NCBI GenBank assembly: GCA_964247055.1
Contig: OZ176051.1
Span: forward strand, 3,720,001-3,784,000
Direction: 5' to 3'
Source of the DNA: Paragordius varius
Lineage: Eukaryota > Animalia > Nematomorpha
DNA: 64,000 nt
This document shows, in pieces, positions 51,083-58,504 of this stretch. Numbering within the stretch: position 1 is the stretch's first letter; each line of letters starts with the position of its first letter. A program made the translations under genes and the position numbers. A model generated the notes under the pieces. The model ran no database searches. It saw only the letters and a list, made by a program, of their open reading frames with translations, and was not told the DNA's origin.

Positions 51083-54000
51083 CTATTCTTCGTCGCCCTG
51101 TTCTTCCCTCGATATCATTAAGAAATGATCTTTATCATCTATCACACCATTGTCACGTTCCATACTAATATTATTGCGTTCATACTCGCTATCCGCTGTC
51201 GTCGTTTCCATGACAACCTTCGTAAATAATGATTCCAGTTCAGTTAGCTCTCTTTCTAAATCCTCTTCACCCAAAGATGCGTAATCAGGACGGGTGGCCG
51301 CTTTGTATTCCTCAATGAGTTCATACACCACGGTTCGCGAATCATCGAGTTCATGTAGATCGTTGGCAAATATTTCTTCTTTGCGAAACATGTCGAGAAA
51401 GGCTTCTCGTTTCCGCAATTTATCATATTGTTTGAGTGTTTGATCAAAAAGCTAATTTGTAAGAGAGAGAGAGATTAAATTTGATGATAAAAATTAAAAA
51501 GTGTGCTAAAACATACTGAAACAACATTGGTGTGATTAGCTAACATCAAACCACTAATTTTATTAGTTTTATCAATGTACGGTGATTTTCGCGATAAAGC
51601 CACTTGAATTGACGACGGGCACCATGGGACAAATTTTACTGGGTGGCGTTCATTTATACGCTGTAAACTTTTATGAACCTAAATTATCACATATAATATA
51701 GCCCCCCAAAAAAATAAAAAAAATAATATTCATGGTTTAGTCGTTTTAAAAAAACAGCCCACTCAAACTTAATAATCGTTTTTAATTTTTAGATGCGTAT
51801 ATCATATTAAGTTGCCCACTTATTTTACTAGTCCTTAATATCGTGTAGACCCAGATATATTGAAGCCCCGTTAAAATAATGTAATTACTTGGCAACGATC
51901 GAAAAAATACAAGGGTTCAGAATTATAAAAATACAGAATGCAAAAAACCAAAATACATAAAATAATTGTTTTTAAAGAAGTTACATTTTTTCAAGCTGCC
52001 CTATTTCATTAACACATTTTGATGGTTAAAAATTTTAAATGTATTTCGTATTAATTTTTGTTAGTCATTAATTAATAATAACCATTTATTTAAATAGTAA
52101 ATACCTTAAACATTGGGTTTTATTGGTAATTCAGATATCGTTAAGAAATTTTCTGCTCTGAATACCTAACTTAATCCTCAATTATATATGTATTCAATCA
52201 ATAAATTGACTTTGTATATATCGCGCTTATTATCATTTTAGCTTTTAAAAGTTTAATCCTTAAGAAGTTATGTATCATTCCACATTATACCTCCGTAGAA
52301 TCGATATCTCCCTGTATGATATTGAGAATTGACAGGTAACAATGTTCCAACGTTTTATCATGATTCATGGAGACCATCATATTTTTTGGCTGGAGTAATC
52401 GTCTCATCACATCTAAAACGGTCGTTTTTCGCACGTGAGAATGAATACTCGCTGATGATGATTGCATATTACTGAAACTTTTTAGTGATTGATTACTTGC
52501 AGAGTTTGATATCCCCTGCAAATGTTATAAAAGACAATCGAATAGTTCCTGAAAAATAAATCATAAATTTTGAAAAAACACATACGTCCATAGAACCCAT
52601 TCCGCTTTTCACACCATCAGTTAAAGGAGAAAGTAACACTTTTCGCTGATCTTCGAAAACTGGGAGCGGCGTATAACCAGTCATAAGATAATGCAATCTG
52701 TCAAATGTAATTATATAAATATTGTAGACTAAGTTTAAAAAGGTGTTAATTCAAAAAAAATCGATTTGAAAAATATGTGTCTATTCAAAAAATCCATTTT
52801 AACTCCACATATGATCCCGAGAATATTAATTATTGCTATAATGGTTGTATAGGTTTTTAAATTTGAGGGCTAAAACACATTATATAATTTAAGTAAGAAA
52901 AAAATTAAAAAATCATTAATGCGTGCATATGCATGTGTTTCCTTATTAACAAATTTGAAAAAACCCATATAACTAATAAAATTGCTGTTTGATTAAACAA
53001 ACGTAACACATGAATCAAACATTAAAATTGTCAAAGTTGCATTTTCTAATTATATCTTTTATTTGGAATTGATTTAAAAAATTAAGTTATATTTTTTTAT
53101 TAAATATTTTCTCCTAATTTCGCACCAAGCTTTTTTCTAAAGGGGTATTTTGCTTAAAATATAGTAAAAACTCATTTTGTGATAACGAGACCGCACAAAA
53201 GAGGTGTAAAATTTTAGTAATATCGCAAATTATTATTGGTTGACATAGAACAAAATTTTTTGTGATATCATCACTTTTAGTTCCTCAATTAGAAACATAT
53301 ATGAAAGTATAAAAATCTTTGCCGATTTCTTCGCAAATAGCATTGGAATAAACTTATTTTTCGCAAAAAGACATTTAAAATTGTCCGCACAAAAAACGTT
53401 TATATTTTTACCTTGGTGTAGGTATTAAGCTAGCTAAAATGCCAGCCAAATCATTATGCATATAACCAGGGTATCGTAATGTTGCAGTGCTTGATGCCAT
53501 GATTGTTGAAACAAATAAATTGATTTGTGGAAATGATACTTTGTTTAATTTCATTCGCTCCGTAGCTATGCGATTAAGGGCGGTATTATCCAAAACAATC
53601 TAGATATTTATCATATAACCAATAAAGAATTTGTTGATATTGCAAAATGTAAATGAAACAAATTGGTGTAATATCACAGTAGTATCTGGTTGTTTATAAA
53701 AAAATGAGTAAAAGCTTTGAAAGAGACACTCAATATTTTGAGACGATTAAATTGAATAATATATAATAAACAAATTATAATTTTGTACCACAGCGTCCGT
53801 ATTTTCTGTCAATCTTTTGAGCGTTAAAATTGAATTGTAGGGTTGGACAACCACATCGCTAACTTCATCTTGGTTAGGAAACACGGAATATGTTTGTAAT
53901 AATTTTTTGGGGAATCTTTAGGGAAATAAAAAAATTTAGTTTTTTCTCAAAAAAATGATTATGATGCCATGTGTTTTATATATAAAAATTAAAAAGTAAT

Positions 54001-57000
54001 AATATCTATAATTATATATCTTTCGTATGAATACCTCTATTCGAACAAATTAATTATTAATTTTAGCCAATTCGATTCTTAAAATAAATATAGTGCTTAA
54101 GAGGCAACGTCAGACCGTTTATTATAACCGCTCTAATATTTAGCTCCATTTTTGAAAATTTTTAATGTTGAAAGCTCTTTTATTTCAAGTGAATTCCATA
54201 TTTTATTGCGTAGATATTGTAATATTTATAATCAAAAATACTTTACCTATCATGAAGTGTTTCCATAAAGTATGATCCCATACCGGAACCAGTTCCTCCA
54301 GCAATCGAGTGGCATATAACAAAGGCCTTGACATAAAAAAAATAATAGTCAATAAATGATTCAATGCTAAAATATTAAAATATACAGCAAAAAGGTGCGT
54401 ATATAGTGAATATTGATCATAAAGCTACTTGATACTTGATACTTGATGGCTTTTTGTCTTCAATTTTGAAGGTGGCCGTGAACGGTCTTATTCCAAAGGT
54501 CCTTATCTAGACATTTGGTAATGTCGAGGTTTAGGGTTTTTATGTCATTTTTAATGTTGTCGCTCCAGGAATGTGTTGGGCGCCCTTTGCGGTTGTTTCC
54601 AAAGGGTTGTATGTGCTTGATGGTTTGGAGTGGGTGGTCGGTTTGTCTTCTTTCAATGTGACCCAAGTATTTAAGCCTGCTTCTTTGTATAAACTTTTCT
54701 ACTGTGTCATTTTTGTGTTTAAGATGAATATTGTAGTCAGAACAGCAAGCTTTAATTATTTTATTTTCCGTATTTATCATTTTGTCAAGATTTGTTTTGT
54801 TTAGGGGCCATGTTTCGGTGGCGTAAGTAAGAGCTGGTCTGACACCTGCTTTGTATATTAGCCATTTATTATTGTTAGATACATTTTTATTTTTAAGGAC
54901 AAATTTTAGGGAATTGACTTTACCCCATGCTTGTTGGATACGTTTCCGTATTGCTCCAGTTACATGACCTTTAGAGTCTATGACGTCTCCTAGGTATGTA
55001 AACTGGTCTACTATTTCTATTGAGTTTTCGTCGATTGTCATATATGTCGAGCGTGTTTGAGTTGTATTATTGTTTTTACAGTTGTCACATTTAAAGTTTA
55101 TTTGTTCGTTGAGTTTGCCGGTGATTTTGGAGCATTTTTTGTGAACCCAGAATTTGCATTTGTTGCATTTTATTGAATTTGTTTTGACCTCTTTGTCGCA
55201 GATGGCGCATGGATATTTGGGGCGCTGCGTACGATCTCCTGATATCATTATTTTTGTTTTATTAATATTTATTTTCAGCCCATGGTTTTCTAAACAGATT
55301 TTCCATGTTCTGAATTTGTTTGAGATGTTTTCCATTGAAGTATCTGTTAAAACGATATCATCCGCGAAGATTAACTCCCAGGGCGGTTGAGTAGATATGT
55401 TTTTTGTTATACTGTCTAATATTATAATGAATAGTAATGGACTAAGTACAGACCCTTGGTGTAGGCCAGTGTTTGTCTTGAAAGGTTCCGTGTCTCCTAT
55501 TTGCGTGCGTACCATTGTAGTTGTATTTTCATAAAGGAGTAATATTATTTCTATTAAATATTCTTCGATGTAATTTTGTCTTAGGGCCCATTTGATTGTT
55601 GCCCTAGGGATATTATCAAAAGCTTTCTCCAGGTCTAGAAATATGTGGAAAAGTTTTTGATTTTTTGAAAGGTATTTTTCCTGTAGCTGCCTGATTATGA
55701 AGATGGCATCTGTGGTGCTGTGTTCTTTACGAAATGCAAACTGGTTATTTGATATTGTAATGGTTTGTCTAAGGCGATTGTCAATGATGCTTTCAAATAT
55801 TTTGAATGTGTGTTCTAAAAGTTTTAAGGGGCGGTATGAGGAGCAGACGAGACGATCCCCCTTATTTTTATATATAGGGATCGTTATACTTTTATTCCAG
55901 TCATGGGGAATTTCACGTTTGGTAAGAATTTCATTAAAAAAAGTTGTTAGGTAGGATGTTAAGCATGGTATTGGTTTAAGCAGATCGATTGATAGTTCGC
56001 TGGCACCTGACGACTTGTTTGGCTTCATTTTTTGTATTGCTTTTAATACTTCATTTTCTGTAATATCGTGGATGGGTCCGCTCGTGGGTGGTTTTAGTGT
56101 TAGAGGGATTTTTAAATTGTTGGTTTGGTTCATTGATTTTTCTAAGCTTTCTTTCCATATCTTGATTACACTTTCTGGGTTTGAGATTATTTCATTCATA
56201 TTGTTTTTTATACATTTGGTTTTAATGATGTCTTGTTTGTTTGAGTTTATATTCTTTATGTATTTAAAGATTTTTTTATTTTTAACCTGGTCCTCTAGTT
56301 TACTGGCCAGTTTTAGGCAATTTTCATTTATAGTTTTTCTAATTTCTTTCTGCGCTTTGTGTTTTGCGATCAGATATGTTTGTCTGTTTTTATCGTTGCT
56401 ATCCCTTTTCCATGCTTTGAAGGCGTCGTTTTTTTCTTTAGTAACCTCTTTTAATTCCTTTTTCCACCACCAATTTTTCTTTTTTCTATTGTATGGTTTG
56501 CATCTCCCACAAATATTATCTGCTGTTTTAACTATTGTTTTTAGGTTATCCCATCTTGAACTAATGGATTCATTGTTTTGCTGGAGCTTTTCGGATGCCT
56601 GGTTGATGTATTTGTTCCTGGTTGTTTGATTTTGTAGTTTATTGTGGTTGATTTTGGCAGGTCTTTGGTATAAGGGTTTAGTTTTTAGTGTTTTCAAGAC
56701 TGCAATCACTATTTTGTGTTGAGTGAAGCTAGTTTGATGAGTTTTAATGTTAAGTAATTGTGGCCGTTTTATTTTAGGCAAAAGGATATAATCGATCATG
56801 GTAGATGAGTTTGCTGTTTGAAAAGTGGTAAGTTGATTGTGGTTTTTTGTGAAGTGGGTGTTGGCTATGATTAGTTGGTTTGCTTGGCAATATTCTAACA
56901 TCTGTTCTCCCATCTTGTCAGTACTGCCATAGCCGTTTCCACCATGGACTTCCCTGAAATCGTGTTCATTATTACTGATGTGACTATTGAAGTCACCTCC

Positions 57001-58504
57001 TAAGAAGATGGATTCCTTGCCTGGTATTGTATTTGTTAGATCTTGAAGTTCCGTCCAAAATTGTTGTTTAATTTCGTCTTTTAAACCTGGTTGGGGCGCG
57101 TATATCGATATTATATTTAGGATGTAGTCATCGTGCACAACCTTAAGCTGTATTATTCTTTCATTGTGTCTCGTTACTTGGATAACGTTTTCGCGAAGAC
57201 AATTTTTAATCGCTATTGCTACACCAGCCTGACCATTTTCTTGTCCTTGATAATAGAGTGTGTAATTGTTCGTGGTAATTAAGTTGTCTCCTTTTAATCT
57301 GGTTTCTTGTAAGCAGCAGATGTCGACATTCTTAGATTCGAGAAAATCAATTATCATGTGTAGTTTTCCATTTAAAGTACCGATGTTCCAGGTAGCGAAT
57401 TTAAATGTGTTGAGATTATTCATAATTCAGGTGTCGTGTTTTTTATATTGTTATATCAGTTTATTATTATTATAATTATTCGGTATTGGTATCGTTATGA
57501 TGAAATAAAAAGTATTAAATTAATTGGTAGGAGGATTTTGTAATGAAGATATAATGTTAATAGTAAGAAAAATTAAATAAGTAAATATATATTATTGTTA
57601 TGATCGTAGGTAGAAGTTATTAATAATGTAATATCAATTATTATTATCGTTTCGTTTGAGAGTAAGTAGTTTTTGAATAAGACGTGTTCATGGTGTATAG
57701 GTTGAGGCGAGGTTTTTACTTTTCACATGCCCTTGTGAAAAAACTCCTTACGGAGTAGATGTTTTTGCAGAACATCCAAAACTGGCCTCTGCTGTTCGTT
57801 CACCAAAGGTGATCCGACCAACACCGCGGGGAGGTAGCAGTAGGACTTTGTTGGTCTGATCATAAAGCGTAAATTATTTAATTTATTAGTCAAAGTTTAT
57901 ATATGTAACTATATAATTATCATCGTATTTTATAAATATCTAAAATACTTGTAAAAATAAAATTATTTAATAAAATATCGCTAGCATTTTTTATAATTAA
58001 GTTATTTACTTCTAAGCTATCGCTGTTATCGGCTTCTCGATCAATAATTTCAAATATATCTTCACTTAATTTCCCAGCCTATATTGTAATTTAAATCCTA
58101 CTTGGGAATATCCACTGGCCCAATTATTTCCAGCACCACCCCCATGTTCAGAAAGATAAATATTTTCTCGGTTGAATAAATCTTTATTGGTGGAACTTAA
58201 AATTGAGTTTATTACTCTGGGTTCCAAATCCAATAGAATAGCTCGCGGTATATAATGTTGATCATCGGACTAAAGTTTTTAAGACACAAAAACTTGATAG
58301 AAGAAAACGTCTTTTCTATCAATGCCTTCTGTTACAAAGTCCTCCAAAGTTCCTTCTAAAAAATATAACAATACATATTATACTTGGTGTAATACCGTGC
58401 TCTTTGCACAGTGTTTTCCAAAACTCTAAACCAACTAAAATAACAAAATCCTAACTTTGATTTCCACATTGTCCAATTTGTAATGTTATAATTTCTCGGG
58501 GCAT
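51083..58504 (-). CDS. TUBG1: Gamma-tubulin, 11 exons
   Basis: [16 protein letters not shown]|[14 protein letters not shown]|[108 protein letters not shown]; TAG at 51083-51085. Confidence 0.97.
54460..57423 (-). CDS. RTE ORF: APE endonuclease, reverse transcriptase and a PHD-like zinc finger
   Basis: [23 protein letters not shown] (APE); [34 protein letters not shown] (RT); CAIC..CNKC..WVHKKC..CDNC insertion; FTYLG and KYLGHIERR downstream. Confidence 0.95.
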   Translation of the reverse strand: MNNLNTFKFATWNIGTLNGKLHMIIDFLESKNVDICCLQETRLKGDNLITTNNYTLYYQGQENGQAGVAIAIKNCLRENVIQVTRHNERIIQLKVVHDDYILNIISIYAPQPGLKDEIKQQFWTELQDLTNTIPGKESIFLGGDFNSHISNNEHDFREVHGGNGYGSTDKMGEQMLEYCQANQLIIANTHFTKNHNQLTTFQTANSSTMIDYILLPKIKRPQLLNIKTHQTSFTQHKIVIAVLKTLKTKPLYQRPAKINHNKLQNQTTRNKYINQASEKLQQNNESISSRWDNLKTIVKTADNICGRCKPYNRKKKNWWWKKELKEVTKEKNDAFKAWKRDSNDKNRQTYLIAKHKAQKEIRKTINENCLKLASKLEDQVKNKKIFKYIKNINSNKQDIIKTKCIKNNMNEIISNPESVIKIWKESLEKSMNQTNNLKIPLTLKPPTSGPIHDITENEVLKAIQKMKPNKSSGASELSIDLLKPIPCLTSYLTTFFNEILTKREIPHDWNKSITIPIYKNKGDRLVCSSYRPLKLLEHTFKIFESIIDNRLRQTITISNNQFAFRKEHSTTDAIFIIRQLQEKYLSKNQKLFHIFLDLEKAFDNIPRATIKWALRQNYIEEYLIEIILLLYENTTTMVRTQIGDTEPFKTNTGLHQGSVLSPLLFIIILDSITKNISTQPPWELIFADDIVLTDTSMENISNKFRTWKICLENHGLKININKTKIMISGDRTQRPKYPCAICDKEVKTNSIKCNKCKFWVHKKCSKITGKLNEQINFKCDNCKNNNTTQTRSTYMTIDENSIEIVDQFTYLGDVIDSKGHVTGAIRKRIQQAWGKVNSLKFVLKNKNVSNNNKWLIYKAGVRPALTYATETWPLNKTNLDKMINTENKIIKACCSDYNIHLKHKNDTVEKFIQRSRLKYLGHIERRQTDHPLQTIKHIQPFGNNRKGRPTHSWSDNIKNDIKTLNLDITKCLDKDLWNKTVHGHLQN
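57786..57856 (-). ncRNA. HDV-like self-cleaving ribozyme at the exact 5' end of the RTE element
   Basis: Minus-strand read: P1 GACCAAC (57856-57850) / GUUGGUC (57822-57816); P2 CUGCU / AGCAG plus CCU / AGG; P3 ACC / GGU; L3 UCCCCGC; GG for P1.1; P4 UCACC-UUU-GGUGA; J4/2 ACGAAC with candidate catalytic C at 57798. Folded by eye. Confidence 0.88.

Follow-up and report, generated by a model that had tools for sequence, protein, structure and literature searches.

A ribozyme-headed, RTE-like LINE lying in sense within gamma-tubulin intron 5 of Paragordius varius

The 64,000-nucleotide (nt) stretch of Paragordius varius DNA analyzed here (positions 3,720,001 to 3,784,000 of contig OZ176051.1, assembly GCA_964247055.1; hereafter the window) contains, on its minus strand, a gamma-tubulin gene whose fifth intron is occupied by a retrotransposon of the type that lacks long terminal repeats, headed by a ribozyme like that of hepatitis delta virus (HDV). 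We consider it very likely that this insertion is a young, full-length, RTE-like long interspersed nuclear element (LINE) that landed by chance in sense orientation in a single-copy gene, and that the ribozyme serves the element. If the insertion changes gamma-tubulin output at all, this would be a by-product that is either tolerated or slightly harmful, rather than a control that has evolved. As an example of a ribozyme-headed LINE, the locus is clean and sharply bounded.

A full-length element with a fixed 5' end

Read directly from the letters, the element is 3,431 nt long and spans 57856-54426 on the minus strand. GCTTTATGATCA is found at 57868-57857 and again at 54425-54414, abutting the element on both sides, and the two copies form a perfect target-site duplication (TSD), which is exactly 12 nt long since the letters bordering the copies on the outside are unlike (C versus A). 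The parts of the insertion, all on the minus strand, are as follows.

57857..57868, minus strand: 5' copy of the TSD, identical to 54425-54414 (read from the sequence)
57786..57856, minus strand: HDV-like (drz-agam-1-type) ribozyme, predicted cleavage 5' of G 57856 (Rfam RF01787, our own model R1, covariation)
57424..57785, minus strand: remainder of the 5' untranslated region (UTR), with a short conserved segment after the ribozyme and then AT-rich sequence (sequence reading)
54460..57423, minus strand: single intact open reading frame (ORF) of 987 amino acids (aa), end coordinate including the TGA stop (ORF list and Pfam)
56776..57396, minus strand: APE-type endonuclease domain, aa 10-216 (Pfam Exo_endo_phos, E 1.6e-15)
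55216..55863, minus strand: reverse transcriptase (RT) domain, aa 521-736 (Pfam RVT_1, E 1.4e-30)
55075..55209, minus strand: PHD-like zinc finger right after the RT, aa 739-783 (Pfam PHD, E 1.1e-4, score 22.6 bits, slightly below the cutoff of 24)
54426..54459, minus strand: 3' UTR of 34 nt, ending in (ATCAAGT)x3 plus A, the tail being 54447-54426 (sequence reading)
54414..54425, minus strand: 3' copy of the TSD (sequence reading)

A first-pass annotation of this DNA had described both the ORF and the TSD as intact, and this description holds: the 987-aa frame is open from 57423 to 54460 and the two 12-nt copies are identical. LINEs of the RTE type have a single ORF with an N-terminal APE and an RT, lack an ORF1, measure about 3.2-3.5 kb and end in a very short 3' UTR with short tandem repeats, with a TSD of variable length. 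The element fits this type in its architecture, with 3,431 nt, one 987-aa ORF carrying APE and RT, a 34-nt 3' UTR, (ATCAAGT)x3 and a 12-nt TSD.

The nearest proteins found share 31-34% identity, are ~1,050 aa long and are encoded on metagenome contigs of ~3.4 kb, some of them annotated with a PHD domain; such an annotation is found in the distant relatives P0001, P0003, and P0005. Named matches, such as marsupial and dog RNA-directed DNA polymerases with 22-24% identity, do not separate the LINE clades. The PHD-like finger is of the C4HC3 type; to connect it with a chromatin-directed insertion bias would be speculation.

The same annotation had placed the start of the element at G 57856 (G1 in the ribozyme numbering used below), directly beside the TSD, and had named copies starting elsewhere as grounds against its reading. 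Homology with other copies does begin at this base, next to GCTTTATGATCA. A genome search with the 5' junction gave many copies, and at least 10 of them (L002-L006, L008, L009, L010/L012, L011, and L014) start at G1 or within 1-2 substitutions of it, each beside an unrelated upstream flank. Most copies of two sister families, B and C, likewise start at G1 beside unrelated flanks. These observations support the view that the predicted cleavage site of the ribozyme sets the 5' end of the family. At the other extremity, at least 40 other copies have their 3' ends at query positions 261-275, i.e., window positions 54440-54426, so that their ends coincide with the 3' end of the window element or precede it by as many as 14 bases. 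Just past the ribozyme, CCAGTTTTGGATGTTCTGC forms a conserved segment that is common to related families.

Over about 2 kb, identity to other copies is 97.8, 96.5, 96.4, 95.6, 95.1, 92.9, and 87.5%, and the 71-nt ribozyme is identical in four of them (L002, L004, L006, and L009). The gamma-tubulin copy is young, and other recent copies exist alongside it.

The ribozyme head and its relatives in the genome

A search with HDV-like covariance models had been proposed as a check of the fold. Positions 1-82 of the Rfam drz-agam-1 model (RF01787) align end to end with the head of the element, starting exactly at 57856 and ending at 57786, with a score of 32 bits, below the 37-bit cutoff of the family (E 1.9e-4, 701 nt searched); our own covariance model, R1, gives the window ribozyme 85.5 bits. 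With G1 at 57856, its structural parts on the minus strand are as follows.

P1: 1-7 with 35-41 (model alignment)
P2: 13-21 with 64-71, A16 bulged (model alignment)
P3: 22-24 with 32-34 (model alignment)
L3: UCCCCGC (core U and G present)
P1.1: C26,C27 with G47,G46 in alignment columns, equal to G43,G42 in the window copy (two Gs after P1)
P4, a short hairpin: 45-49 with 53-57 (model alignment)
Catalytic C in J4/2: C59, window position 57798, within AACGAAC (model alignment)

The HDV-like core of the window copy is complete, with the J4/2 C, the U and G of L3 and the two P1.1 G-C pairs, and the helices P1, P1.1, P2, P3, and P4 are nested in the canonical order of a double pseudoknot. The catalytic C that the first-pass annotation had assigned to 57798 is indeed position 59 of J4/2. 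The window ribozyme shares with drz-agam-1 of Anopheles gambiae the double pseudoknot, the core ACCUCC.CG.GGU followed by GG and then by the J4/2 C, and a match over the full length; it differs in its score (32 versus 37 bits), in a shorter P4 and in a J4/2 reading CGAAC where the model has CUAAC. We class it here as a drz-agam-1-type HDV-like ribozyme and do not count it among the curated RF01787 members. The minimum-energy fold of the 77-nt head is no better than that of shuffled sequences (z -1.22), a value that is uninformative because the method cannot represent pseudoknots.

The fold is borne out by a large set of relatives. A whole-genome search yielded 19 sister ribozymes above the RF01787 cutoff, the best with 50.6 bits, and at least 128 ribozyme matches were obtained among 150 scored candidates with a genome-search model of our own that was built from P2, P3, and P4 only. 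These ribozymes split into at least three sequence families. Covariation was counted over 37 distinct sequences that had been aligned to a model; an alignment made with MAFFT, in which the 3' half of family C was misplaced, was dropped. The full pseudoknotted structure had 93% of its cells paired, and this fraction fell to 30-50% when the partners were slid by 1-3 columns. Cells with changes on both sides of a pair numbered 65; shuffling gave 20, and in 500 shuffles no count was as high as the observed one. P1, which is absent from the aligning model and whose counts were therefore not fitted, was 93.8% paired with compensatory changes at three of its seven pairs; such changes were also seen at 5/8 pairs of P2 and 2/4 pairs of P4. 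The P1.1 pairs were C-G in 32/35 and 35/35 of the distinct sequences with letters at both positions. Covariation across the three ribozyme families thus supports the double pseudoknot and, within it, P1, P2, and P4, and the genome-wide set, with 128 or more ribozymes from at least three families, backs the HDV-like fold strongly through natural covariation. Judged from its sequence, the first 71 nt of the element are a genuine HDV-like ribozyme for which self-cleavage is predicted.

Several features of individual families and copies were noted. The families differ in J4/2, which is CGAAC for the window family, CUAAC for B and CCAAC for C, with the catalytic C kept in all three, and P4 is about twice as long in family C. 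One family B copy (L058) is broken and should not cleave, since beyond GGCAAA an AT-rich stretch takes the place of the 3' strand of P2. In another copy (L048), ribozyme positions ~5-28 recur in the 25 bases preceding the ribozyme, as if the element head had been duplicated in part at its 5' end, in tandem or nested form. Two antisense open frames of 499 and 459 aa (L050:1579-3075 and L043:1572-2948), both with RVT_1 and PHD matches, sit immediately upstream of other ribozyme-headed copies and represent head-to-head or nested LINE insertions.

Taken with the shared 5' end, the ribozyme suggests how the window copy would have arisen. Because the DNA copies begin at G1, the RNA template must start at G1, and because such an RNA starts with the 5' strand of P1, it must have been cut out of a longer transcript begun upstream, the ribozyme trimming this transcript to its exact 5' end. 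Target-primed reverse transcription would then have inserted the element and left the 12-nt duplication, its sense landing in gamma-tubulin intron 5 being a matter of chance. For the window copy itself, that longer transcript would be the gamma-tubulin pre-mRNA; cleavage in this copy, and the host pre-mRNA as its source transcript, are what we infer from this arrangement.

Several points limit this account. The window copy does not reach the gathering threshold of RF01787, and the element was assigned to the RTE type by its architecture. No ribozyme was found in the contigs of the closest protein relatives (L031-L033), either with Rfam or with our own model with its filters off, although these metagenome contigs may be cut before their true 5' ends. 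Finally, of five sequencing runs that match the locus none is recorded as RNA, and one presumed RNA run gave no match there, results that speak neither for nor against expression.

Consequences for the gamma-tubulin transcript

The identity of the host gene is given by exon 4, which matches gamma-tubulin structures with an E value of 2e-25, against 4e-8 for beta-tubulin. With the exons searched one at a time, exon 4 was found once in the 110.6-Mb assembly, i.e., at a single locus, and no second haplotype or paralog of the locus was seen in the assembly. The exons downstream of the insertion are open and match Pfam Tubulin and Tubulin_C, and the gene therefore looks intact. Gamma-tubulin is essential.

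The geometry described in the first-pass annotation was reproduced, and each number given there proved correct: the element lies on the strand of the gene, in sense orientation, with G1 153 nt past the intron 5 donor (58009) and about 3.5 kb ahead of the acceptor. Subtracting the element and a single copy of the TSD leaves an intron of 240 nt, in agreement with the proposed enlargement from about 240 to 3683 nt. With a ribozyme-capped LINE in sense orientation in the intron, the pre-mRNA transcribed from the insertion allele probably carries a self-cleaving site. We also noted that, within 54426-57856, AATAAA motifs are found 12 times on the sense strand of the element versus once on the antisense strand, and these sense motifs could trigger premature polyadenylation of host transcripts.

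How many pre-mRNAs would carry this site depends on whether the insertion is fixed. It is possible, although we would lean the other way, that the insertion is private or polymorphic and perhaps heterozygous, so that only some pre-mRNAs carry the ribozyme, and that the allele is a mildly harmful hypomorph leaving the population. The perfect TSD, the intact ORF and a divergence of only 1.6-2% from the nearest copies are as expected for such an insertion. Contigs of runs X1, X3, X4, and X6, all assembled and DNA-like, were placed over 4,361 letters of the locus and, among the matches listed, showed neither a spliced joint nor a pile-up of starts at 57856. One contig of run X3, 212 nt long, fits the window from 58045 to 57858, that is, up to the edge of the element, and continues with 24 letters unlike the element, and a neighboring contig (58115-58341) carries six variant letters and has a higher depth. 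Both may stem from a second haplotype or an empty allele. Against this, no joint skipping the element and none bridging either junction was seen among the contig matches listed for the four runs, which are part of a much longer set, no empty-site contig was found among them, and the assembly holds a single copy of the locus. As these matches are only part of the set, the contig evidence is ambiguous.

If carriers and non-carriers exist, the locus would make it possible to ask whether, in a natural essential gene, an early HDV-like ribozyme in a long intron lowers mRNA output, or whether tethered exons are spliced nonetheless. The question has so far been addressed with reporters and with CPEB3, and the locus opens no new principle. 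A bolder version, which we hold to be unlikely, is that the ribozyme cleaves most pre-mRNAs of the insertion allele long before the acceptor exists, producing either a natural hypomorph or a rescue by exon tethering, and that sense intronic copies act as transcription-fed sources of the family. If true, the allele would be a natural, genetically tractable test of the kinetics of ribozyme versus spliceosome.

The first-pass annotation had gone further and had presented the locus as an undescribed race between ribozyme and spliceosome on every gamma-tubulin pre-mRNA, a functional arrangement in which the host promoter feeds the element and gamma-tubulin output is tuned. The claim of novelty falls, as the race has already been published (PMC6765202, PMC10274809, PMC2995048); it is a described and tested concept, and what would be new is no more than its presence in this animal's gamma-tubulin gene. 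Among LINEs with HDV-like ribozymes, RTE and baggins are promoterless and are transcribed through their intronic location (PMC6765202), and the logic of an upstream transcript trimmed by a ribozyme has been published for R2, L1Tc, RTE, and baggins (PMC6765202, PMC3774820). In the CPEB3 gene, the self-scission half-life of an intronic HDV-like ribozyme is matched to the time RNA polymerase II takes to reach the next exon and to co-transcriptional splicing, and its cleavage lowers the host mRNA and protein, both of which rise when it is blocked (PMC10274809). As recounted in PMC2995048, a hammerhead ribozyme in a reporter intron leaves splicing efficient through exon tethering (Dye, Gromak & Proudfoot 2006), whereas splicing is lost when the reporter intron contains a fast HDV ribozyme (Fong, Ohman & Bentley 2009).

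As an account of this locus, too, a tuned race is highly improbable. The position of the ribozyme, close to the donor and far ahead of the acceptor, would permit a race, the gene is single-copy, and fast intronic HDV ribozymes abort splicing in engineered genes, just as the activity of the CPEB3 ribozyme lowers its host mRNA. However, slower intronic ribozymes keep splicing efficient via exon tethering, and the downstream gamma-tubulin exons are intact, while a strong loss of an essential gene would not be tolerable when homozygous. Moreover, what was inserted is one young member of a mobile family and not a conserved host feature, and related insertions show no sense bias toward host genes. 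To assess orientation, we took 1.5 kb upstream of each of 61 copies, either ribozyme-headed or truncated at the 5' end (91.5 kb in all), and compared the 60 longest open segments per strand with Pfam. Host families were in sense orientation at about 7 loci (Lyase_1, eIF-5_eIF-2B, Mito_carr, GTP_EFTU, PRMT_C, CycT2-like_C, and a RING finger) and in antisense orientation at about 7-8 loci (Lectin_leg-like, Pus10_C, ECH_1, SH3/RhoGEF, DUF7819, NAD_binding_1, and UDG), so that no preference for sense was seen in these 61 flanks, a comparison of low power. The youth of this mobile copy and the lack of sense bias argue against an evolved host-feeding arrangement.

That the ribozyme is inactive or irrelevant here, and that the common 5' end reflects a +1 start at an internal promoter of the kind used by LINEs of the jockey or I type, has very little probability: the window copy is under the Rfam cutoff, its minimum-energy fold does not exceed shuffles (the same uninformative z) and its self-cleavage is a prediction, but the 71-nt sequence is identical in four other copies, all core nucleotides are present, and the compensatory changes that keep P1, P2, and P4 are explained only by selection on the fold.

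The young, chance-inserted, ribozyme-headed LINE favored here resembles the known ribozyme-terminated LINEs (RTE, baggins, R2, and L1Tc) in that the ribozyme forms the first ~70-80 nt and its cleavage site is the first base of the element, and in encoding APE and RT in a single ORF within about 3.4 kb. Like them, it would have no promoter of its own and would depend on co-transcription or read-through, host introns being one source. It differs from them in belonging to a lineage in which a PHD-like finger follows the RT, with only 31-34% identity to the closest proteins found, and in its host site, a gamma-tubulin intron, where cleavage is predicted. The CPEB3 ribozyme is likewise HDV-like and sense-oriented in an intron of a protein-coding gene, where cleavage can pre-empt host splicing. 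In contrast, it is stand-alone and conserved in mammals, with a demonstrated effect on its host mRNA, whereas the window ribozyme heads a young mobile element, forming the first 71 nt of a TSD-flanked unit with copies up to 97.8% identical. Engineered intronic ribozymes set up the same race of co-transcriptional cleavage against exon tethering and splicing, but they were placed in reporters in human cells, whereas the window would hold a natural case in an essential gene.

Structure of the gamma-tubulin gene

The gene occupies 51086-58504 on the minus strand. The exons and introns around the insertion, all on that strand, are as follows.

58504-58456, minus strand: exon 1, 49 nt
58455-58435, minus strand: intron 1, 21 nt
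58434-58384, minus strand: exon 2, 51 nt
58383-58356, minus strand: intron 2, 28 nt
58355-58294, minus strand: exon 3, 62 nt
58293-58270, minus strand: intron 3, 24 nt
58269-58102, minus strand: exon 4, 168 nt
58101-58079, minus strand: intron 4, 23 nt
58078-58010, minus strand: exon 5, 69 nt; the donor GT begins at 58009
58009-54327, minus strand: intron 5, 3,683 nt; acceptor at 54327
54326-54247, minus strand: exon 6, about 80 nt, 3' end approximate (translation, Pfam Tubulin E 3e-6)

The guanine-cytosine content is 0.35 in the element versus 0.175 in the 240 nt of host intron 5. The introns of the gene fall into two modes. Introns 1-4, at 21-28 nt, agree with the earlier description of a tiny-intron genome, which does not extend to the later introns of roughly 300-700 nt; intron 5 would have measured 240 nt before the insertion.

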